A stretch of DNA of 64,000 bases from Azolla caroliniana (lineage: Eukaryota; Plantae; Polypodiophyta): assembly GCA_043228905.1 (NCBI GenBank), contig JBHGNT010000005.1:24738001-24802000 (forward strand). The letters are read 5' to 3'. Within the stretch, counting starts at the first letter, position 1. Each line of letters starts with the position of its first letter. The translations under genes were made by a program, and so were the position numbers. This document shows positions 20,072-33,313 of the stretch, piece by piece. A model generated the notes under the pieces. The model was given only the letters and a program-made list of their open reading frames with translations, ran no database searches and was not told where the DNA came from.

Positions 20072-21311
20072 CAGTAGACATTCGGTTAAGTGCGTGCCCA
20101 CATAAGTGCACCATTCTATTAAGTGCGCCTTTTTTAGTGGTCAAAATCCGGATAAAAAAAATTACATTGTTTCATGACGAAATTACATCAAACCAAGTTA
20201 AAACTATGTTCCAAACATTCAGAAAACAACGAAAGGAGCTTCTGTGGGTATGTCTATGTGTGTGTCATATGTGTGTGTTTACGATTACAAGGACATCCCA
20301 CAAGTTTAGTCACACAGGAACCAAGAAGTGTTATGGTAACGAGAGCGAGTCCAAACATTAAGAAAACAACGAAAGGAGTTTCTGTGGGTATGTCATGTGT
20401 GTCATGTGTTCTACATGTGTGTGTGCGTGTGTGTGTTACGATTACAAATCTGTGATTTTGATTCTTGATTAAAGAACATAAGCAAAGAATGGAAAACAAA
20501 TCTTGATGATCGTGAATAGTCAAGTTTTGTAGCAATTGGCTGTGAACGTGAGCTCTCCTTCTCCACGCGCAACATATCCATCTGTTCTCCTTTTCTTTCT
20601 GTGTGTGCCTGTATCACATCTGTGTGTGCTCTTTTCTTGCATGAAGAAAGCCTCTCTCCCTCCCTCTCTCTTTCTGTGCATCTTGTTTAGATGACAAAAG
20701 TTGCAGTCGGTGATCTATCTGTTGCTCCCCCTCTCTCTTTTCTTGTCTCCTCCATCTGTACTTCAATTCCTCAAACTTGCTGCCACTAGGAAGAAAACGC
20801 AAGAAAAAATCCCATCGCATGATGCATCCAAGGAAGCTCATTAGGTTTGTTGCATAATGGATGTATTTCTCAGATGTAGCAAAAAGACAAATACCATCTA
20901 GAACCGAGAAAGAAATTGAAGAGTGTGTATGGTGAAACTAGAAACATTTTAGGTTAATTTAACACATAAATTGATCACTTTTCTTATCAAGAATTGTATG
21001 ATTAGCATACAGAAGGAAAAATATTTAAGAAAACCCTAAAAATTTCCCAAAAACCCTAAAATGTTTGAGAGAAAGAAATTGAAAAGTATGAATGGTGGAA
21101 CTAGAAACATTTTAGGTCAATTTATCACATAAATTTATCACTTTTCTTATCAAGATTTGTATGATTAGCATACAGAAGGAAAATATTTCAAAAAACCCTA
21201 AAAATTTCCAAAAAACCCTAAAATGTTTCAGAAAACCCCTAAGTGCGCAGCTCAGTTAAGTGCGCACTTCTTCCTTGCGTTCAAATTGCGCACTTAACCG
21301 AATGTCTACTG
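20072..21311. mobile_element. Non-autonomous Tc1/mariner-superfamily (pogo-like) DNA transposon, 1240 bp, inserted in the copia 5' LTR
   Basis: Perfect 23-bp TIRs CAGTAGACATTCGGTTAAGTGCG with TA target duplication; the empty site is visible in the sister LTR. Internal ~163-bp direct repeats (about 20907-21230) carry AAACCCTAAA motifs. No transposase ORF was recognised. Confidence 0.93.
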
Positions 21312-22634
21312 TATTAGTTAACCTTACAAAGAAAGTGGTGTGTTCACATTACAAAATAAAAAGGTGTCCTGTCCAGGTGAACAATGTGTTCACATATACG
21401 AATAATTACCTAATTTGTGAACTACGAGCCTTTACACCTAACACTTTGCATTGCCATCCACCATCTGTAACATCGGGGAACCTCTCCATTTTAGAAGGAA
21501 ACATACTGAAGTTATTATGACTTTAAGAGGAGTGTGAATTGCTTCCATGAGTATTTTGATTTATATGTTCTAAACTATCCACTTACAAAATAACTTTAAT
21601 GTGTCCATTTATAAATATGTTTCCAATCTATCAATTAAGAAAGCTATCAGCTTCTGTTGACATTCTTTTCATAATGTTTATAGAAACTTGATTTGTACAT
21701 AACATACAATGGGATAATGAAATTAAAGTTGATATTCTCATATGCAAATAGCACAATGGGGAAGCACTTTGATTGTTATAGTCTTGCGTGGTTACACATT
21801 CTCGCAAGTAAATCTTGAATACTTTTAGCATTTGTGTGTGTGTATGGTTAGTAGTTCTAGGTCTCATGCCACTTATGTTAAATTCATCATCCCTTTATAA
21901 AAGAGTGTGCATGTACATCTCTTGCACTTCTCATCATCTTTAGTGTGGTCGACTCACGAAATTATGTGAGGGTTGTGTGCAATTATAGCACAGTGCATTG
22001 CTGAAAACTTGTTTGTTTCAAAGAAGAAGAAGAATGGACAAAAGTGAGAGAGTTTGCCCATACCTGCATAAACAATGTTCAATGGGTTTTTTCCCAAAGT
22101 CACAGTATAAATTTGTACAAGATGTTTGTGCCATCATAGATGAAGAAAATTTTTCTTTCATGATATTTATGCTCCATGTTTCACTTCAAGCCATGACATG
22201 GTTATAATTTGGTGGGTCAACAACCTCATTGTCTCGGGGAAGGGTGATGCATACAAAATCTTTGGCAGGTGGATACCGAGCAACCAACATGTCGAAGAAG
22301 TGCACACAACACAATTGGGCGGGTTGAATATTATACCAAAGTGAACCCAAATTTAGTTGTCGTAGCACGCATGGGTGACCAAGTGGTGGCTAATCGAATT
22401 AAAAAGCAACAAGGAGTGCGTGCACAAAATGGAAGTAAGTGGGTCGCGATGGGCCTTTATACACCCACCAATGAAAGCTCGAGAGAATGCATGGTCAAGC
22501 CACGACTATTGAAGCAGCAGGCAGGGCGCTTGTCATACGAAAGGATAGCAGGGCACATAATTTCTTCATACTCTATTCCTATTGTTTCAGACATGAGTAG
22601 TAAAACCCGAAGCCTATGTATGTGCAAAGCGCAA

Positions 22635-22866
22635 TCCGGACAACCGGAGGTATGTCCGGCCAATCGGAGGTATGTCCGGCCAATCGGAGCTATTTGTCTG
22701 GCCAATCGGAGCTATATATCCGGCCAATCGGAGTTATATGTCCAGCCAATCGGAGCTATATGTCCGGCCAATCGGAGCTATTTGTCCGGCCAATCGGAGC
22801 TACCTGTCCGGACAATCGGAGCTACCTGTCCGGACAATCGGAGCTATTTGTCCGGCCAATAGGAGC
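22635..22866. repeat. Minisatellite, ~22-bp unit TGTCCGGCCAATCGGAGCTA(T/C)N, ~11 copies
   Basis: Directly visible; ends about 120 bp upstream of the PPR ATG. Confidence 0.95.
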
Positions 22867-22987
22867 AATGGCGGGCAGGTCATGGGAGAGACATGTCTCT
22901 CAATGCTTCTAGACTCTAGTCTCTTCTAGCTACCATAGCTATTACCTCAGTGTTTGTGTCTGTACATCCACACACAGTCTAGCATGG

Positions 22988-25594
22988 ATGGCCTCTTCAT
23001 CATACATGGTGGACACATCCCTCCTCCCAAATGAACGAGCATGGACATCTGCCCTGCTCCTCTGCATCACATCACAGGAATGGACCCAAGCTCTTTCCCT
23101 CCATCGCCAAATGCAAGAGGCATGTACACTCCCCACACACTTCACTTTCCTACCCCTCCTCAAAGCTTGCTCTAAGCTTAAAGACCTCAAAACAGGAAGG
23201 CTCCTGCATGCCCAAATCAATGGATTGCACTGTGGCCATCACCTTCTTGTATGTAGGAGCTTGGTGGGCATGTACGCCAAGTGTTGCGCTCTCCCTGAAG
23301 CTCGAGATTCCTTCTTCGAGCTCCCTGAGAGAAATGTGGTCTCTTGGAACACTATGATATCAGGCTATGCTGAATATGGCCCTCGAACACATGCACTGCA
23401 ATGTTTCGAGCAAATGAAGTTCGAGGGCTTCTCCCCTAACGATGCCACCATAGCTTCGATGTTTAAGGTATGTGGAGCCATGGAAGCATATAGTAAAGGT
23501 CACGAAATTCATATGATGTTGCTTATGCTTAAGAATAAGAAGGATAAGAATGATGATGGTTGTGGTGCTGACGATGATGGTCTTTGTCATGATGATTCAG
23601 AGATTGGATTGTGCGTTGGAAATGCATTGATTGGAATGTATTCGAGAAGGGGGGGGTCATGCGAAGCTGCCCGAGTGGTATTTGATGGCCTTGTGGATCG
23701 AGATGTCGTCTCTTGGACTGCCCTTATTGCCGGATATGCTGAACATGGCTCTGCCGAAGAAGCCTTAATTTGCTTTGAAGCCATGAAATCCCATCACATA
23801 GCTCCAAATTCAGTCACTTTTGCTTGCATCTTGAAGGCTTGCGGTAGGCTTGGAGACATGCAAATAGGCCAAGAAATTCATGTGGATATAGTACAAGAAG
23901 GGTATGAATCAGATTTAACTGTTGGGAATAGTGTGGTTGGGATGTATGTGAAATGTGGTTCGATGGTCCAGGCTCGGGATGCTTTTGATGAGCTGAAGGT
24001 TAGAGATGTGGTGTCATGGACGGCTCTTATTTCTGGATATGCTGAAAATGGCCAAAGTGAAGAAGCTTTGAACTCTTTTGAGAAGATGTGTCTAGAAGGC
24101 ATACCCCCGGATGCTGTCACATATGCATGTTGCCTGAAAGCTTGTGATGGCATTGGAGCCATAGATGAGGGCCGAATATTACATGAGAAGCTCGCTAGTG
24201 ATGGATTTGAGAGTGAGATTTCTATCAGCAATACATTGATCGGAATGTATGCAAAGTGTGGGCTTTTACTGGAAGCTGAAGATGTGTTTTACTCACTACC
24301 AGCTCGAAATGTTGTCTCATGGACGGCACTTATTGCAGGATATACCGAACATGGGTCTGGCCAAGATGTACTCAAACATTTCGAGCAAATGCAGCATGAC
24401 GGAATCACGCCCAATGAAGTAACATATTGTTGTGTTCTCAAAGCTTGTGGAATCATTGGGGCAGCTCGAAAAGGTCAAGAAATTCACTTGGAGATCTCAC
24501 AGAAAGGAATAGAGTTAAGAGATATGTCACTTGGGAAAACTCTTGTGGGCATGTATACCAAGTGTGGATTGCTTTCCAAGGCTCAGGATGTCTTCGATAA
24601 GCTTGTGATTAGAGATGTAATGTCATGGACATCGATGATTTCTGGCTATGCCGAACACGGGTTCGGTCACGAAGCACTGAATTGCCTTGACCAAATGCAA
24701 CGTGAACAGGTTGATTTGAATGTGATCTCATATGTTTGTGCCATAAAAGCTTGTGGAAATATAGGAGTATTAGCCAAGAGCTATAAATTACATGCAGAGA
24801 TTATTTTCAAAGGTTTTGAACGAGAGATTTTGGTTGCAAATAGCCTCATTAGCTCATATGCAAAATGTGGTGCTTTTGAAGAGGCATGGCTAATCTTTAA
24901 TAAGTCTCCTGTTCAAGATGCTGTCTCTTGGTGCTCAATGATGAAAGGATATGCTTTGAACCAGGAACCAATGATGGCTCTTAATTGCTTTAAAAGTATG
25001 AAAAAACACGGCATCCATCCTGATGCCGTGACATTTATATGTCTTCTCAATGCATGTTGTCAAAATGGCATGCTCCTTGAAGCATACCAATATTTCGAAG
25101 AAATGGAAGCTTTGTATGGAATTGTACCATCCATAGAACACTATTCTTGTATTGTGGATATCCTTGCAAGGTCGGGATATTTATATGAAGCAGAGCATTT
25201 CCTTGAGATGCTTTCTCCGCCCCCCGAAGCAACATGGACAGCTTTGCTAAGTGCTTGCAAAATGTATGGAGATGAAGAAGTAGGGATGAGATGTTTTAAG
25301 CTGCTTGTGGAGTTGAATCCCAAAGATGCAACTTGGTATGTGATGATGTCGGATATTTATTTAAGTGTGGGGAAGTTGGAGGATTCTTTGCGGATTGAAG
25401 AGATGAGAAAACTTGCACGAGCTGATAAAAAGCCCGCCATTGCCTTAATAGAATTAGATAACAAAATTCATGAATTTCTGGTGGGAACTAATCAAGAAAC
25501 AAGAAATTCATCAACCATGCATAAGTTGGTGCGTAAGATGAAAATGGACGGGTATTTATTAGACCTTGATCTTTCCAAGATTCAATTCTCTTGA
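22988..25594 (+). CDS. PLS-class pentatricopeptide repeat protein with E domain and KP box, lacking the deaminase core (868 aa)
   Basis: Repeated P-L-S triplets (NVVSWTALIAGY / PNSVTFACILKAC / VGNALIGMY), E motifs, then KKPAIALIELDNKIHEFLVG...GYLLDLD and stop. No HxE or CxxC. Confidence 0.93.
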   Translation: MASSSYMVDTSLLPNERAWTSALLLCITSQEWTQALSLHRQMQEACTLPTHFTFLPLLKACSKLKDLKTGRLLHAQINGLHCGHHLLVCRSLVGMYAKCCALPEARDSFFELPERNVVSWNTMISGYAEYGPRTHALQCFEQMKFEGFSPNDATIASMFKVCGAMEAYSKGHEIHMMLLMLKNKKDKNDDGCGADDDGLCHDDSEIGLCVGNALIGMYSRRGGSCEAARVVFDGLVDRDVVSWTALIAGYAEHGSAEEALICFEAMKSHHIAPNSVTFACILKACGRLGDMQIGQEIHVDIVQEGYESDLTVGNSVVGMYVKCGSMVQARDAFDELKVRDVVSWTALISGYAENGQSEEALNSFEKMCLEGIPPDAVTYACCLKACDGIGAIDEGRILHEKLASDGFESEISISNTLIGMYAKCGLLLEAEDVFYSLPARNVVSWTALIAGYTEHGSGQDVLKHFEQMQHDGITPNEVTYCCVLKACGIIGAARKGQEIHLEISQKGIELRDMSLGKTLVGMYTKCGLLSKAQDVFDKLVIRDVMSWTSMISGYAEHGFGHEALNCLDQMQREQVDLNVISYVCAIKACGNIGVLAKSYKLHAEIIFKGFEREILVANSLISSYAKCGAFEEAWLIFNKSPVQDAVSWCSMMKGYALNQEPMMALNCFKSMKKHGIHPDAVTFICLLNACCQNGMLLEAYQYFEEMEALYGIVPSIEHYSCIVDILARSGYLYEAEHFLEMLSPPPEATWTALLSACKMYGDEEVGMRCFKLLVELNPKDATWYVMMSDIYLSVGKLEDSLRIEEMRKLARADKKPAIALIELDNKIHEFLVGTNQETRNSSTMHKLVRKMKMDGYLLDLDLSKIQFS

Positions 25595-25890
25595 GGATTG
25601 TACCAAAATTTGCTTATGCCAAATCCACTATCAATGTTGATTCAAGAGGCGAGAAATTCGTCAAAGTTGGTGTGAAAGATGAAAATAGAATGGTACTTAC
25701 TGGACCTTGATCTATCGAAGATTCATTTCCCTTGAGGATCAAAACATAACTTGTTTTTACAGAATCCATCATCAATGTTGATTCAAGAGGTAAGAAATGT
25801 CAACATGCATAAGTTGATGCAAGTGACGAGAATGGAAGGGTACTTATCGAACCTTCATCTGTCCAGGATTCACTTCTATTGGGAATCAAA
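25490..25890 (+). repeat. Three diverged tandem copies (~140-150 bp) of the PPR C-terminus and stop region
   Basis: tcaaga...agaaat...aagttg.tg...aatgga.gggta.tta...acctt.atct.tc.a.gattca.ttc recurs at about 25492, 25641 and 25782. Confidence 0.85.
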
Positions 25891-26012
25891 CCAATGATAT
25901 TTTTGGCCATTATGATGGGGTTGGCGGTCACATTTGTGGTGACCATGGAGGAGATGACCCTAATGCTTGTACCATAAAGATGCATGGGCCTATAACATCA
26001 TGGTGCCTCTGT

Positions 26013-26133
26013 TACCAATCTTGAGTCTCTCGTACAGATCAAAATATCTATGGTATGAATCATGTGCCTCTGATACCAATCTTGAGTCTCTCGTACAGAT
26101 CCAAATACCTATGATACGAATCATGTGTCTCTC
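26013..26133. repeat. 60-bp tandem duplication
   Basis: taccaatcttgagtctctcgtacagatc.aaata.ctatg.ta.gaatcatgtg.ctct twice. Confidence 0.85.
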
Positions 26134-27142
26134 TACTACATTGGGTCTTTTGAGCATAGAAAAAGTCAGGGGAGTGTGGCTAGTACTTGTTATTGTCCAT
26201 ATATTAATGCAGGCACACTATATAGGGTGCACCACCTCACATGTGATCTAAGAGGTTGTGATCAACCAGATTGAATTTTGGGCACTGCAGGTAGAGGGCT
26301 ATAAATGTGGATTAGGTTAGGAGAGATTGAGACGAAAACCTTTTAGCATGGGGATGAACTGAAAAATATGGACGGGAAACTCAATGGGTGAAGGGGGGTA
26401 AGGGTGGTAGATGGTCATGTTTGCAACAGGTGGCTAGATGGGGTAGGTTTGGGCTGTGAGACACCAAGGGTGGTGTAGAAGACAGTGGTGTAGAAGACAT
26501 GCAGGTCATTTGGACAACATCATGAAAGGTGAACACAATAGTGTATATATCTGTCACTCCCCATTGTTATTGACAAATAAAAAACCATTGAAGGTGATTT
26601 CCATGATTTACAATGCCATAATGGACAAAACTTGATATAACTTTCTATCAAAGCTATAAACCTCTACATAAATTTATATCTTTAGACATAAAATAATTGA
26701 TCAGTTATCCAATACCGTCTAAATGAAAAGAGCAACATGGCAGCATCAGTATATAATCACAAAATATTTTGAATCCAAGACATTGATCATTACAACAATA
26801 AACATGGCTTTGATATACCAACCAATCTTTGACATCTGATGCCTTAGCAAAATATTTTATTGCAATGGGTGAACATCCTTCAAAATGATTCGAAGGGCTG
26901 TCCATCAAACAAACAAATCATCTTGAAGCAATGAGGCTGTGTATGGGATGGGCTTCTGCCCTTCTCCCCTCACTATCAAAACTGTATCTTATGCAGCTTT
27001 TTGGTAGTTTACTCATTTTCTTTCGTTTGTTATTCTCGTAGATGAGGACATCCTCTCTTGATGGGCCTCAGTATTTTGGACTTTTCCATAAATTATATAC
27101 ATCTTGTTTTCAATATTTCTCAGAAAATAGTAAGCCTAGTTG

Positions 27143-27316
27143 TTGGCTTTTCTTTTCTTTTCAGCTGCAATAGTGACCTCTTCCTTGCAGTTCATATTCA
27201 TCATAACTTCGCCTCAAGTATTTTGGACATTGGCTTTTATTTTCTTTTCAGCTGCAATAGCAACCTCTCCCTTTCAGTTGATATTCATCCTAATTTTGCA
27301 TCATGGATCTTGGGCA
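27143..27316. repeat. 87-bp tandem duplication downstream of the DYW:KP gene
   Basis: ttggctttt.ttttcttttcagctgcaatag...cagtt.atattcatc.taa twice. Confidence 0.8.
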
Positions 27317-27503
27317 CGAGTAATCTTCAAATACTAGCCTCAATCCCATGATGAAATAGAATCTGAGACTTCCTTCACTTGCTTGACAAAGTTATACCTT
27401 AACATGCCAAGTGGTCACTGACACTACTGCAGCATTAGTATTTTGGTGATTCATAATTCCTCTTTGCCCAACAAAGAGATAGACCTACCCATGTTTACAA
27501 TGA

Positions 27504-30500
27504 TCAGAAAGCATCTCCACAAGAACATAATCCATCCTTAAAGTGATGAATACAGCAATCATCTCGAAGAATGATTTCACGCTTTTCGACATGGGATAAG
27601 ATCTTACTTGTGTTATGACAATCACTACACATCCTTAGATTCTTTGTCACATGTAAAGTCACCCCTGGACTAGTACTCAGAAGTCCAAAAGCCAAGGCTA
27701 ATTTCTCAGCATGTTCACATAATGCCGACTCCTTCCCGACATCAGCACGTGAATTTAAAACTAAATCAAGGTTAGGAAGATGACCTTCTTTTTTCAGAGA
27801 TGAACTCATACTATTCAAGCACTTCAAAACCTTATCATATCCATGTTCATCATTGCCAACCACAAACTCATGTATCTTCTTATCGACCTCTATCAATGCT
27901 TTGGCAGGCTTTTTAGCTGCCCCAACATGCTTCCTTAGTTCCTCTATCCACATCACATCATCCCATCTACCAGCAGTAGCATAAATATCAGCCATAAGGA
28001 CATACCAAGCAGCTATGTCTGGATTTATATCAACAAGCTGCTGAAAGCATCTCGATCCTAGTTCCAGTTCTCCATATGTTTTGCAGCCACTAAGCAATGC
28101 ACTCCACGTTCCCTCTGATATAGGACAACACATTGTAATGAACTGCTCTGCCTCATATAACCTACCTGATCTTGCTAGGAGATCGATAATGCTGGTATAA
28201 TGCTCTGTTTCCGGCATGATGCCATACTTATCTCTCATCACCTTGAAATATTCTTTGCCTTCATGCACAAGGCTCGCATGGCTGCATGCAAGAAGAAGAC
28301 ATGAAAATGTGATGGCATCTGGCTTCACCTTGTCCTCTTGCATGTCCTCAAAATACTGCATTGCCTTTTGACCTTTGTGATTAACACCATATGCTTTAAT
28401 CATTGTGCTCCATGCAACAACATCGCGAACCTGCAACCTATCAAATACTTCCTGAGCCTCTGAAACTGAACCACATTTAGCGTACATGCTGATCAGAGCA
28501 TTGCTCAAAGAAGGCTCCAAATTGAATCCACTTCGCCTGAGCTTCACATGGATTTCACGCCCCATGTCTAAAGCTCCTAAATGACCACAAGCTTTGAAAA
28601 TATTGATAAATGTCACAGTATTAGGAGTCTGACCTTGCATCTGCATTTCATCAAACAAATTTAATGCTGCTTGGCTGGGTTCATGTTCAACAAATGCAGA
28701 GACTAGTGTGTTCCATGACACAATATCCTTACGCAAGAGCTTCTTAAACACTTCTTCTGCATCGAAAAGTAAACCACATCGACCATACATTCCAATCAAA
28801 CTATTACCTGCATGCAAATCAGTTTCGAGTCCCCTAAATACAATCGCCGTGTGTATTTCTTGGCCTTTCTCAACTTCCTCAAGAATCCCATATGCTGTCA
28901 GTGCACAAATAAAAGTGATTGAATTGGGTGCAATGCCATCTTGTTCCATCAAATCAAGATACTTAATTGCTTCTTTATACAGTCTATATTCAATATACCC
29001 AGTGGTAAGTGCAGTCCACTCCACAACGCTTCGTACACGAAGCTTATCAAAGGCATTCTGTGCCTCTGCGACTGCACCCAACTTTGCATACATGCTGACA
29101 AGAGTGCTTCCCACTGCAGGATCTTTTTCAAGCCCTCTTTGCACGATATCCGTATGTTCTTTTCTTGCTTTATCAAGATCTCCTAAAATACAACAAGCAT
29201 TCAAGCTGCATGCAAATATCACAGCATCAGGTGATATGCCTTCAAACTGCATGCTTTCAATATAATCCAATGCTTGTGCGGCAAGTCCATGATCGGCAAA
29301 TCCTGCGATTAATGACGTCCATGATGCAGCATTTTTCACAGGCATGTAGTTGAAAACGTGCTGGGATTCCAAAACAAACTCACATTTTGCATACATCCCG
29401 ATCAAATGATTTGAAATTGATAAATCGTTTTCAATGGCAGTTAGCACGACTTCCATGTGGATTTCTCGTCCTTTATCTATCAATCTTAAGATGCCACAAG
29501 CTTTTAAACTACTAGAGTATGTGACAGAATCAGGAGATACACCCTGCATTTTCATCTCTGCAAAGCAATTCAAAGCTTCTTCACCATCTGCAGAGTCTAC
29601 ATAACCTGCAATCAGAGTATTCCATGACACAACATCCCTATCAGGTAATCTCTGAAAAGATTCACGTGCATCTTCAATTGATCCACATTTTGCATACATG
29701 CAAACTAAAGAGGTTCCAGCAAAATTATCTCTATCAAGCCCCTTCATAACCAATTCTGTGTGTAATTCATAACCTTTTTCTATAATACCAAGAGCACCAC
29801 AAACCTTAAAGGTGCCTGAAAATATGGAACCACTAGGATTGACACCTGCTAGTTTCATTTGGTCAAATAATTTTAGAGCCTCATTCTGAGGTCCATGTTC
29901 AACATATCCTGCAATAAGTCTACTCCACGAAAGCTCGTCTTGATATGTCAGCTCCTCGAAGACTTCCAACGCCTCTATAAGCATCCCGCACTGGGAATAC
30001 ATATCTATTAAAGCTGGCGCAATGGAAGCATGCTTATCAAAACCGTGATGCAAAACCTCAAGATGGATATTCCAGCCTTTCTCAATATCTTTAAGTTTTG
30101 TACAAGCTTTTAATAGAGCTAAAAATGTATGGACACTAGGATTGATGTTATCCTCTTGCATCTTCCTATGTAAGAGAAAGGCATGGTTTATAGCCCCGTG
30201 TTCACCATGTCCTAGTATGAGAGATGTCCATGAATGTTCTTTGCGGTGAGCCAACCTGTAGAACACAAGTTGTGCATCAAGTATGCTTCCACATTCCACA
30301 AACATTGGGACAATATAGTTCTCCACGGCTTTATGAGTCGAGAGACCATTGCTGCAGACATGCAGATAGATAGACCTTGCGTATGCTAAGTTTTTGGTCT
30401 TCCTGCATCTTTGCATGATTATGATTGTATTCTCTATTGAAGTTGAACCAGTTTCCCATACCTTAAGTACATGAAAAACTTCTTCAGAAGTTAGTGGGAG

Positions 30501-31358
30501 CTCAGCATTACAACTTTCCCGAATTTCAAATGAATGGGTTTCTGAGCCTGATGATTCAACATTTTCAGCTCTATCAAATATTTTGACCACATTGTATCCA
30601 TGGTTGCTTACATTTTCAACATGCTCTTCAGCTCCATCAAATTTTCGCACCACGTTCCATCCATGGCCCTCGACACCTTCAAAGCCATTAAACTTATGTA
30701 TTATATTCCATTCATGGTTTCTCAACTTTTCAACATCTTCAACTCCATTAAACCTTTGTACCACATTGCACAAATGGCTTCTTCCCTTCTCAACATCTTC
30801 TTCAACTATACCATATTGTTGTATCGCATTGAATTCATGGCTTTTCACCTTCTTGGAAAATCCTTCTGTGTCAACATCCTCGATTGTATCAAGCTTTTGG
30901 ACAACACTTCCCACCTTCTGAATATCTTCTTCGACTATATCAAAATTCCGTCTTACATTGCATCCATGGATACTCCCTTTCTCGAAAAACTCGGCTTTCT
31001 CAACGTCTTCTTTAGCTATATTAAAACGGTCCGACTCTATGGTGTATCCATAAACTCGCACCTTGTCAAAAAACTCTGATTTCTGTCCATTTCCAAGCAT
31101 ACTACTAAAAACTAACGTAGCATCCTTTTCACATGGAGAAACTGACCAAAAACGAGATTCGTAAGCATACCTGAATCCATGGAAGCAGAGGCAGCGACTT
31201 CGGTTTCTGGATGTAAAACTTAGCGAAGGAATGGTGGGTCTGGCAGAGGAGGGTCGAGGGGTAGGAATTAGTCTGCAGATGGCGTTGTGCAGGCACGGAG
31301 AGTTACAAGGAGTAGGAGAAAGAAGAGGAGGAGGAGAAGCAGAGGAAGAAATCTGCAT
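27504..31358 (-). CDS. PLS-class PPR protein with DYW:KP deaminase-like domain (1284 aa); candidate organellar U-to-C RNA editing factor
   Basis: Ser/Pro/Arg-rich transit-peptide-like N-terminus, long PLS array and E motifs. KKPAKALIEV replaces the PG box, followed by HAEKLALAFGL, KNLRMCSDCH and HHFKDGLCSCGDAF. Confidence 0.95.
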   Translation of the reverse strand: MQISSSASPPPLLSPTPCNSPCLHNAICRLIPTPRPSSARPTIPSLSFTSRNRSRCLCFHGFRYAYESRFWSVSPCEKDATLVFSSMLGNGQKSEFFDKVRVYGYTIESDRFNIAKEDVEKAEFFEKGSIHGCNVRRNFDIVEEDIQKVGSVVQKLDTIEDVDTEGFSKKVKSHEFNAIQQYGIVEEDVEKGRSHLCNVVQRFNGVEDVEKLRNHEWNIIHKFNGFEGVEGHGWNVVRKFDGAEEHVENVSNHGYNVVKIFDRAENVESSGSETHSFEIRESCNAELPLTSEEVFHVLKVWETGSTSIENTIIIMQRCRKTKNLAYARSIYLHVCSNGLSTHKAVENYIVPMFVECGSILDAQLVFYRLAHRKEHSWTSLILGHGEHGAINHAFLLHRKMQEDNINPSVHTFLALLKACTKLKDIEKGWNIHLEVLHHGFDKHASIAPALIDMYSQCGMLIEALEVFEELTYQDELSWSRLIAGYVEHGPQNEALKLFDQMKLAGVNPSGSIFSGTFKVCGALGIIEKGYELHTELVMKGLDRDNFAGTSLVCMYAKCGSIEDARESFQRLPDRDVVSWNTLIAGYVDSADGEEALNCFAEMKMQGVSPDSVTYSSSLKACGILRLIDKGREIHMEVVLTAIENDLSISNHLIGMYAKCEFVLESQHVFNYMPVKNAASWTSLIAGFADHGLAAQALDYIESMQFEGISPDAVIFACSLNACCILGDLDKARKEHTDIVQRGLEKDPAVGSTLVSMYAKLGAVAEAQNAFDKLRVRSVVEWTALTTGYIEYRLYKEAIKYLDLMEQDGIAPNSITFICALTAYGILEEVEKGQEIHTAIVFRGLETDLHAGNSLIGMYGRCGLLFDAEEVFKKLLRKDIVSWNTLVSAFVEHEPSQAALNLFDEMQMQGQTPNTVTFINIFKACGHLGALDMGREIHVKLRRSGFNLEPSLSNALISMYAKCGSVSEAQEVFDRLQVRDVVAWSTMIKAYGVNHKGQKAMQYFEDMQEDKVKPDAITFSCLLLACSHASLVHEGKEYFKVMRDKYGIMPETEHYTSIIDLLARSGRLYEAEQFITMCCPISEGTWSALLSGCKTYGELELGSRCFQQLVDINPDIAAWYVLMADIYATAGRWDDVMWIEELRKHVGAAKKPAKALIEVDKKIHEFVVGNDEHGYDKVLKCLNSMSSSLKKEGHLPNLDLVLNSRADVGKESALCEHAEKLALAFGLLSTSPGVTLHVTKNLRMCSDCHNTSKILSHVEKREIILRDDCCIHHFKDGLCSCGDAF

Positions 31359-31454
31359 CTCGTGGAGATATGGATTGCATCCTGCACAGAATTTGTAAAG
31401 CCTTAGTTTGTCCGAATTTCTGATGGATGGATATCTTCTGTTTTTCTTTTTCTT

Positions 31455-31455
<1 letters not shown>

Positions 31456-31494
<39 letters not shown>
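31456..31494. repeat. (GA)n microsatellite ~100 bp upstream of the DYW:KP ATG
   Basis: Directly visible. Confidence 0.95.
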
Positions 31495-31496
<2 letters not shown>

Positions 31497-31549
31497 CTAC
31501 TATCGTCTTCTTCTGGGGTCAAATAATATGACCTAATGAGACCAAAAAT

Positions 31550-31764
31550 ATTACATTTCACTACTGAATACATTTGAGAGTGAGTAGTGACTCTCAATGT
31601 TCAAGAACTTTACCAATGAATGTTGTAATCGAGAGTGCACGTTGTGGTTGTGAGAAAATTTCGTGCAAGGATTGGGCTCGGTCGAAGAGATGTGAAAAGC
31701 AAGGTCGAATATGATCAAAAGGCAGAGCATTGTATCAATGTGTGATACTCTGAATCGTGAATTT
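31550..31764 (-). mobile_element. Short 3' fragment of the RTEX-like LINE family
   Basis: Highly similar to 35698-35825; encodes DSEYHTLIQCSAF. Confidence 0.85.
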
Positions 31765-31766
31765 GA

Positions 31767-31798
<32 letters not shown>

Positions 31799-32937
31799 AG
31801 AAAAAAAACCAAGAGTGGAGAGGGGAAGAAGAAGAAGCGAATTTGTTTTTGTTGTTGCGCTCTCTATCGGCAATGGAATTGGGCATAAAGATAAAGTGTT
31901 AGCAAGCCCTCGATTAGAGCTTCGTAACAAGATATAGCAAGTTAAATTTGGTGGTTTGTACAAGCAGCAACAATAGAAATAAGGAATCTTGTGTTGTCAA
32001 CATCCACATACTCAACACACATTGTGGGTCTTTCATTGTCTTCATCATCTTCGACCTCTTTAATCGGGTGAGTTCTGATTGTCTCTCTTGTTCATGGAAA
32101 ATTGTTTTTATCTTGGATCGAAATCACATAAAGAATAATGGATATAAACATAAATTGCTCACAAATTATGGGGGACATCGATATGGAAACAATTAATCCA
32201 AAAAAGAGTAATGTGATGGTTGAATGTAATCATGAAAGGGAAGACATTGGAAGCTCTAAGAGGTTTAAGGGTATTGAGGAAATTAATGAGAAAAAATTTA
32301 CATATGCCGAAGTAATACATGTAGATGAGGTTGACAAGGATCATTGTAATTGGGATAATTTATGGGGAATTGCCAATACGTTGTTGTCTGATATTGTGGA
32401 AGAAAACGAAATGAAGTGAAAGAATGCATTGATGAGGATGTGCATGATATGGAAGTTGATGCTAAGGCAGTGTTGCAATCTTTTGATATATTCTATGATC
32501 GTGCGGTTATATTATTTTTTACTAGGAAAATCCCATACATCAATTGGATTAAACAACGCTTGAGGTTAAGGGCAAGTCGAAGGGGAAAGCAATGAATATG
32601 CAACTACATAGTTTGTCTACTACTCCCGAGACTACTTGGCAAGGTAATTCACAAACTAGGGAGGGTTCTCGAAAAGTTCCTTGGCAACGACAATTTAGGG
32701 ATAAGGGATTACCCCTTCACCTTCAGTTTGATTCATTGGGACGGGTTGTAAATTCATCGAATTCTCGAGGTTTTCGTCAAGCGGGAGAACCTAAACACAA
32801 TATTTCGATATACAACCCTAAGGATGTGTGTTGATGAATCTCAATCTACGTTTGAACATTCAATCATGGATGATCTTGAGCAACTTGCTTGGGATTCATT
32901 GGCTATGGAGGTTCTGAAGTTGGATGTTTGGACATGG

Positions 32938-33313
32938 TGTTAGGATTTCGGTCCCTCCGGATGGGATATGATGAGTACCCGGAGGACCTGGTGAGAACCG
33001 GATGATGGATACCCAACAACGGAAGACCCGGTGAGACCCAGATGATGGATACCCGGTAAGGAAGACCCGGTGAGAACCGGATGATGAGTACCCGATAAGG
33101 AAGACCCGGTGAGAACCGGATGATGCAGGCCCGGTGAGAACCTCTCACCGGATGAAGGGAGATACATGTAAATATGTTCCAGAGAGCCCACTGGGGCTAT
33201 ATTTGTAAATAGCCCGAAAGGCATATTGGTATAAATATGACCTAGGGCAAACTCTTGGTGGTGTGGTCATTATTTTGTATAGAGTTATTGGTGTAACTGT
33301 TGTACAACGTGTA

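Follow-up and report, generated by a model that had tools for sequence, protein, structure and literature searches.

We analysed a stretch of 64,000 nucleotides from the fern Azolla caroliniana (NCBI GenBank assembly GCA_043228905.1, contig JBHGNT010000005.1, positions 24,738,001 to 24,802,000 of the forward strand), hereafter the window, in which all positions are counted. Its central feature is a convergent pair of genes for pentatricopeptide repeat (PPR) proteins of the PLS class, which we call gene A and gene B. Both carry at their C-terminal ends the hallmarks of the DYW:KP type of RNA editing factor; gene B has the complete domain, and gene A stops a short way into it. The two genes and their C-terminal elements are as follows.

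22988 to 25594, plus strand: gene A, an intronless PLS-class PPR open reading frame (ORF) of 868 amino acids (aa), from the ORF list.
25421 to 25594, plus strand: KP box (KKPAIALIEL) and N-terminal stub of a DYW:KP domain in gene A, from the ORF, the orthologue alignment and profiles.
27504 to 31358, minus strand: gene B, an intronless PLS-class PPR ORF of 1284 aa, from the ORF list.
27504 to 27914, minus strand: DYW:KP domain of gene B, from PF14432, the KP profile, matches to solved structures and alignment.

No intron is required in either gene, and the stop codons lie 1,909 bp apart. The initial annotation of this DNA, made from the sequence alone, had described a tail-to-tail pair of intronless PLS-PPR genes about 1.9 kb apart, and both ORFs are indeed found in this arrangement. 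The strings it quoted are also present: KKPAIALIEL in gene A, and KKPAKALIEV, CEHAEKLA, MCSDCH and the terminal GDAF in gene B. Pfam detects PPR, PPR_2 and E_motif in both proteins and DYW_deaminase (PF14432, 8.7e-31, residues 1192 to 1283) in B only, in keeping with the claim that only the minus-strand gene extends into the deaminase. The closest protein matches belong to ferns and comprise sequences of Adiantum capillus-veneris, A. nelumboides and Ceratopteris richardii as well as transcriptome contigs. An Rfam scan of positions 21000 to 33000 returned no match.

From the N terminus onward, protein B consists of a segment rich in Ser, Pro and Arg, a series of tandem repeats of about 20 aa, 23 PPR motifs, E1, E2 and a complete DYW:KP domain; motif segmentation resolves the 23 motifs as L-S, six PLS triplets and P2-L2-S2. 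The ~20-aa repeats, with the pattern H.(W/Y)N(V/I)V.KF(D/N)G.E.VE, occupy residues ~90 to 290 (30490 to 31090) ahead of the PPR array, and Tandem Repeats Finder (TRF) reports a 63-bp period within this region (30564 to 30682). This long, repeat-bearing N-terminal extension distinguishes B from typical DYW:KP proteins. Two microsatellites, (AG)n at 31456 to 31494 and (GA)n at 31765 to 31798, lie just upstream of the gene B start.

DYW:KP PPR proteins are described from hornworts, lycophytes and ferns (Gutmann 2020 and Gerke 2020, as cited in PMC9478123). Several marks set their domain apart: an N-terminal box with KP instead of PG, an HxE motif with Ala or Cys in place of Ser, a variable end in place of DYW, a deletion of three to four residues that removes xHP and leaves a domain of 132 to 133 aa, and an active-site lysine (PMC9478123, PMC11845758, PMC11713852). 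Consensus designs of the class have U-to-C activity (PMC9478123), and a lysine is essential in DYW domains (PMC11845758, PMC11713852). The C terminus of B reads, in order, AAKKPAKALIEV ... CEHAEKLALAFG ... VTKNLRMCSDCH ... DDCCIHHFKDGLCSCGDAF, and its motifs are the box KKPAKALIEV, HAE, a lysine within VTKNLRMC, CSDCH, DDCCIHHF and a GDAF end. Its N-terminal box thus holds Lys-Pro, whereas PG-type matches have KKxPGxSWIE; its HxE motif is CEHAEKLA, and fern KP matches mostly have HAE whereas PG matches mostly have HSE. GDAF stands in place of DYW, most fern KP matches ending in GDxF, and the SHP motif is missing from B when it is aligned with KP and PG domains.

VTKNLRMCSDCH contains the active-site lysine of B, which becomes residue 88 if numbering starts at the first of the last 133 residues (compare Lys88 of KP6). 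In 9kfx and 7w86 its aligned counterpart is the lysine of KNLR, and by the shared KNLR motif the B lysine would correspond to the critical lysines K915 of OTP86 and K194 of DYW1 (PMC11713852). Against the solved DYW domains 9kfx, 7w86 and 7o4e, the B domain aligns from end to end (E 6e-40 to 2e-26). All zinc ligands in HxE and CxxC and the C-terminal H/CxC residues are present in this structure-sequence alignment; B has the same zinc ligands as OTP86 (7o4e, 7o4f), DYW1 (7w86) and the synthetic PPR-DYW protein (9kfx). These solved structures are all of the PG type, with HSE and a DYW end, and B differs from them in both respects.

The KP assignment of both genes, which the initial annotation had proposed, holds when KP and PG profiles are compared, and the tree, the motifs and the alignment agree with it. 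We built the two profiles from hits to the C terminus of B, leaving the orthologue of B out of training. B scores 215.5 bits on the KP profile versus 153.7 on the PG profile, and the tail of gene A scores 39.9 versus 25.4; as the PG set is mostly from seed plants, part of the KP-PG margin may be taxonomic. The tails of A and its four orthologues (described below) score 12 to 22 bits better on KP than on PG. By their motifs, the 116 matches to the B C terminus fall into two clean sets, one with KP box, HAE and GDxF and the other with PG, HSE and DYW; in fern members the usual combination is a K(K/E)(P/R)A box with HAE and GDxF. The PG|KP split in the tree has support of 100/99. Gene B is placed inside the fern KP clade, and the five sequences of the A family form a clade (100/100) nested within it, with the window copy of A outside the group of Pteridaceae orthologues.

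B is thus like the DYW:KP class in its KP box, HAE, the lysine in TKNLRMC, CxxCH, DDCC, GDxF and a score 62 bits higher on the KP profile. An orthologue, P0001, was found on a contig of the JGI data set; it is 73% identical over 885 aa and retains the PPR array, with KRRA at the position of KKPA in B. Both B and P0001 depart from typical 133-aa fern KP domains in having two extra residues at the site of the KP-typical deletion. The ratio of nonsynonymous to synonymous substitution rates (dN/dS) of B is 0.15 to 0.22 over the whole gene and 0.05 to 0.10 over E1-E2-DYW. Code positions are the same in B and P0001 at 21 of 27 sites versus 72% elsewhere, a difference that is not significant and comes from two sequences only. 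Adiantum GOP47_0014019 was considered as another orthologue of B and rejected at 42% identity. By all of these sequence marks except the deletion, which it shows in part, gene B is a DYW:KP protein with a complete domain, and from this class membership we infer that it most likely converts U to C.

Gene A has a similar plan and a different end. Segmentation gives 18 P, L and S motifs, then P2-L2-S2, E1, E2, the KP box and a stub of about 55 aa of the DYW:KP domain; the Pfam E_motif match covers residues 760 to 822. The tail reads ADKKPAIALIELDNKIHEFLVG ... MDGYLLDLDLSKIQFS and then a stop codon, about 55 residues into the would-be DYW:KP domain, and the deaminase core is absent (no PF14432 match in Pfam). 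A full-length search, from which sequences were chosen by identity and coverage, yielded four orthologues from at least four other ferns: P0142 (838 aa, 59% identity), P0152 (835 aa, 57%), P0167, which is Adiantum capillus-veneris GOP47_0019264 (834 aa, 55%), and P0228, which is Ceratopteris KP509_22G068500 (755 aa, 52%). PF14432 is found in none of the four. A and all four terminate within a few residues of each other, just past G(H/Y)xPD(L/V)D, and the positions conserved in their stubs (the KP box, IHEF.VG and G(H/Y)xPD(L/V)D) are common to full DYW:KP domains. At the other end the five share the N terminus MA.L.ER.WTS (22988 to 23035 in A, which has about 15 aa before its first PPR motif). 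The window copy also has a 21-aa acidic low-complexity insertion, KNKKDKNDDGCGADDDGLCHD, within its second L motif (residues ~180 to 200, ~23525 to 23590), and none of the four orthologues has one.

The A family is well conserved. Its dN/dS is 0.10 to 0.17; comparisons of the window copy with the orthologues are saturated in dS (2.1 to 3.4 or undefined), and the ratio is best taken from the cleanest pair, Adiantum versus P0142, at 0.15 to 0.17 (dN 0.165, dS ~1.0). Of the 25 columns of code residues (fifth and last positions in the P and S motifs), 21 are invariant, versus 231 of 572 other columns of the array (Fisher p = 1.5e-5). Because these code residues are conserved, A would still read a specific RNA. 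Placing S2 at -4, the P/S code of the family predicts -21 Y, -19 U, -18 A, -16 U, -15 G, -13 Y, -12 A, -10 G (the position at which the window copy has KD), -9 A, -7 U and -6 G. Evolution is faster in the stub (dN/dS ~0.25) than in the PPR tract (~0.13). The initial annotation had offered a decaying inverted paralogue as one account of gene A and neutral evolution of the truncated gene as a thing to be checked by dN/dS; the purifying ratios contradict both, as do the shared endpoint of the orthologues and the nearly invariant code residues. To judge from these alignments, gene A is under purifying selection and not decaying.

The KP profile gives the A tails higher scores than the PG profile does, the 3-residue KP-typical gap relative to PG domains is present in A and P0167, and the A clade is nested among fern KP proteins; thus, the A family descends from a DYW:KP protein. 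A tblastn search with the B domain found no remnant of the catalytic part anywhere between genes A and B, and searches for a DYW fossil 3' of A, of its Adiantum orthologue and of its orthologue on a Logan contig gave chance-level matches only (E above 3). With no fossil downstream of A, the loss of the domain is ancient, and by the endpoints that these sequences share it is a loss of the catalytic part that preceded the divergence of these ferns. An out-of-frame segment past the A stop, LEDCTKICLCQIH, has a faint likeness to the KE.ALC.H segment that is too weak to claim.

KP-type stubs are rare among the 116 fern and lycophyte matches: they occur in the A family, in P0134 and in one weak partial match, P0183, only, and most DYW-less proteins among the matches stop earlier, in E1 or E2. 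P0134 (Adiantum GOP47_0027851, 1112 aa) has a KP-like box, RKMPAKAAIQV, and a stub that runs to domain position ~67, just before HxE. Its profile scores are 43 bits for KP versus 20 for PG, and it branches away from the A family; by its sequence and placement it is a second, independent KP-type truncation.

The region around the two stop codons holds the following further features.

25455 to 25880, plus strand: tandem repeat of 141 bp in about 3 copies, outer limits approximate and set by eye.
25595 to 26080, plus strand: probable 3' untranslated region (UTR) of gene A; X2, X6 and X8 contigs end near 26077 to 26081.
26200 to 26780, no strand: intergenic gap nearly without contigs, with a bin depth of 0 to 0.65 in all four runs.
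26782 to 27503, minus strand: probable 3' UTR of gene B; X1, X2 and X8 contigs begin at 26782 to 26938 and continue into the gene.

The contigs come from four small public runs, X1, X2, X6 and X8 (three organisms, four studies), and were mapped over positions 24000 to 29999; the longer ones are about 0 to 7% diverged from the window. They span A as far as ~26080 and B from ~26780, that is, ~490 and ~720 nt beyond the respective stop codons. The assemblies of these runs amount to 57 to 95 Mb and reach a depth of 9 to 30 at this nuclear locus, which is hard to explain as genomic shotgun, and the layout of the contigs is that expected of two convergent transcripts. From this layout we infer that both genes are likely transcribed.

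The 141-bp repeat is based on a TRF row (25523 to 25798, period 141, 80% matches) and on inspection of the sequence. Each unit consists of the last ~33 codons of gene A and ~42 nt past the stop. The stop codon lies within the first copy; as this copy ends the ORF, copies 2 and 3 are 3' UTR and the protein is unaltered. Short ORFs in the repeat echo the gene A C terminus. A contig from run X8 leads from 25754 back to 25680 and so suggests another arrangement of copies in a related organism. A 61-bp tandem repeat (2.2 copies, 90% matches; 25997 to 26132) lies where the transcript-like contigs of gene A end. Upstream of gene A, a 22-bp minisatellite (9.9 copies, 89% matches; 22651 to 22866) ends 122 bp 5' of the start codon and produces a spurious 197-aa ORF (22269 to 22862).

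How might these two proteins work? The reading that we favour, and consider more likely than not, is that A and B are neighbours and not a dedicated pair: two independent editing-factor genes, of which A needs a DYW:KP domain in trans. B would select a site in organelle RNA with its own 23-motif PPR array and edit that site, most likely from U to C, with its C-terminal DYW:KP domain. A, assumed to be imported into organelles, would bind a different, fern-conserved RNA site through its conserved code residues. Lacking a deaminase, it would most likely recruit one in trans, marking the site and attracting the DYW:KP domain of another protein, a donor that need not be B. The conserved KP box, IHEF.VG and G(H/Y)xPD(L/V)D of the stub suggest that this segment may serve as the contact for the donor.

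A DYW-less protein of the KP type that borrows a DYW:KP domain in trans is plausible. Gene A resembles the flowering-plant E+ factors, for example CRR4, which stop soon after E2, keep the N-terminal part of the DYW domain and have a full coded PPR array. E+ factors such as CRR4 depend on a DYW domain provided in trans, by DYW1 or by DYW2 and MEF8. The stub of A differs from theirs in being of the KP type and somewhat longer, extending to G(H/Y)xPDLD. According to PMC13386178, MORF partners were added in seed plants. In water ferns, full-length DYW or DYW:KP proteins were reported in 2025 to be far too few for the editing sites (PMC12548569). A is like the DYW-less PLS proteins of Salviniales in that study, in which the deaminase is absent and trans DYW or DYW:KP donors are proposed (PMC12548569). 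The same study saw no obvious C-terminal signature that would tell the donor type of DYW-less fern PLS proteins; the A orthogroup is unlike those proteins in carrying a KP-type box and stub.

The main rival, which we regard as unlikely, is that A has no part in editing and is a sequence-specific RNA binder that stabilises or blocks its target or promotes translation or splicing, with the stub as a structural cap and not a docking site. PPR proteins are well known to have such roles (PMC12548569, introduction), and a strongly conserved PPR code in a protein without a catalytic domain is what this account would lead one to expect. The faster evolution of the stub relative to the PPR tract points the same way, as does the finding that, among the matches, fern PLS proteins without a DYW domain mostly stop earlier still. 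On the other side, the stub conserves motifs common to full DYW:KP domains, pointing to a function related to that domain, and E+ proteins built in the same way serve as editing factors in flowering plants.

We think it improbable, well below the non-editing role, that A and B form a module in which A recognises the site, its neighbour B specifically lends the DYW:KP domain in trans, and linkage holds the two together. The attraction of this arrangement is plain: A has no deaminase and retains a KP box and stub, a complete DYW:KP domain lies 1.9 kb away in B, and transcript-like contigs cover both genes in the same runs. CRR4 and DYW1 provide a precedent for a split factor (cited in PMC11713852), and PMC12548569 proposes trans donors in ferns. 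The initial annotation had likewise suggested a linked specificity factor and catalytic donor. Of the observations made here, only adjacency speaks for that suggestion, and the relationship of the two genes, their codes and the architecture of B speak against it.

The two proteins share 41.7% identity, neither being nearer to the other than to many other fern KP-type proteins, and a sister relationship between them is not resolved in the tree. Where their P and S motifs align, the codes disagree in several of them; thus, A and B should bind different RNAs. With a full array of 23 motifs, B has a predicted target of its own. The trans donors DYW1, DYW2 and MEF8 are known to have no PPR motifs or about five, and B, with its 23, is not a donor of this type, with no or a very short PPR tract. 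In the synteny check that had been proposed for the pair, the 10-kb flanks of the Adiantum A orthologue contained no other PPR sequence, and none of the Ceratopteris matches of B among those listed is on chromosome 22, the home of the A orthologue. Two Ceratopteris genes that both match B, KP509_20G040700 and KP509_20G040800, were considered as orthologues of the pair and rejected, being 38 to 41% identical to A and B. A spacing of 2 kb gives eukaryotic nuclear genes no mechanistic gain, and PPR genes are so extremely numerous in ferns that chance neighbours are expected.

Two further results bear on donors without deciding the matter. A prediction of the complex between A residues 645 to 868 and the B DYW domain (residues 1146 to 1284) gave an ipSAE of 0.01 in both runs, which counts neither way on binding. 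A word search for donors consisting of the DYW:KP domain only returned 21 short proteins; those of the KP type start inside S2, E1 or E2 and have no presequence. They look like fragments of longer genes and count neither for nor against such donors.

That A is a truncated paralogue in decay is very improbable: although the deaminase is absent, a tandem duplication scrambles the 3' end and the window copy has the low-complexity insertion and two altered code residues, the 868-codon ORF is intact, four orthologues share its endpoint, dN/dS is 0.10 to 0.17 with 21 of 25 code columns invariant, transcript-like contigs occur in related organisms, and no DYW fossil lies downstream.

Several points weigh against the reading of A and B as two independent editing factors, or against parts of it. 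A and all four orthologues start 5 to 15 residues ahead of the first PPR motif and have no obvious targeting peptide; the absence of an evident presequence is unusual for a presumed organelle RNA factor. In the window copy of A, the S motif at residue 513 has the code KD where the orthologues have TD, and P2 has CD where they have SD or TD. For B, the alignment gap at the KP-typical deletion is one residue (GNDEH-GYD, as in P0001), whereas typical fern KP domains have a gap of three. As for activity, assays so far cover consensus designs and no native DYW:KP protein (PMC9478123, PMC11845758), and the fern-based design KP6 also performs C-to-U editing (PMC11845758). The runs behind the transcript-like contigs are not on record as RNA. 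As for the separation of the two genes, the synteny comparison covers one other genome and 10 kb per side, with long intergenic distances there, and the adjacency of A and B could reflect co-regulation.

Behind genes A and B stands the wider question of how ferns organise U-to-C editing. B joins the published DYW:KP class as a new member and as a further intact native candidate; E+ truncations and the idea of trans donors in ferns have also been published already. The idea of a linked pair, which gives the locus its striking look, finds no support. The more useful of the two genes is A: its KP ancestry can be read from its sequence, its truncation point and RNA code have been kept in this fern, Adiantum and Ceratopteris alike, and its orthologue in Ceratopteris is in a model fern that is amenable to knock-outs. 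The A orthogroup may add a KP-type C-terminal signature to the picture of DYW-less fern proteins drawn in PMC12548569. More tentatively, and with rather less than even confidence, we raise the possibility that with it a class of U-to-C specificity factors dependent on action in trans can be recognised for the first time, with the KP box and the ~55-residue stub as a docking signature. If true, this would tell which DYW-less fern PLS proteins serve reverse editing, and it would provide a conserved test case for a DYW:KP domain that acts in trans, with a donor that is not necessarily B.

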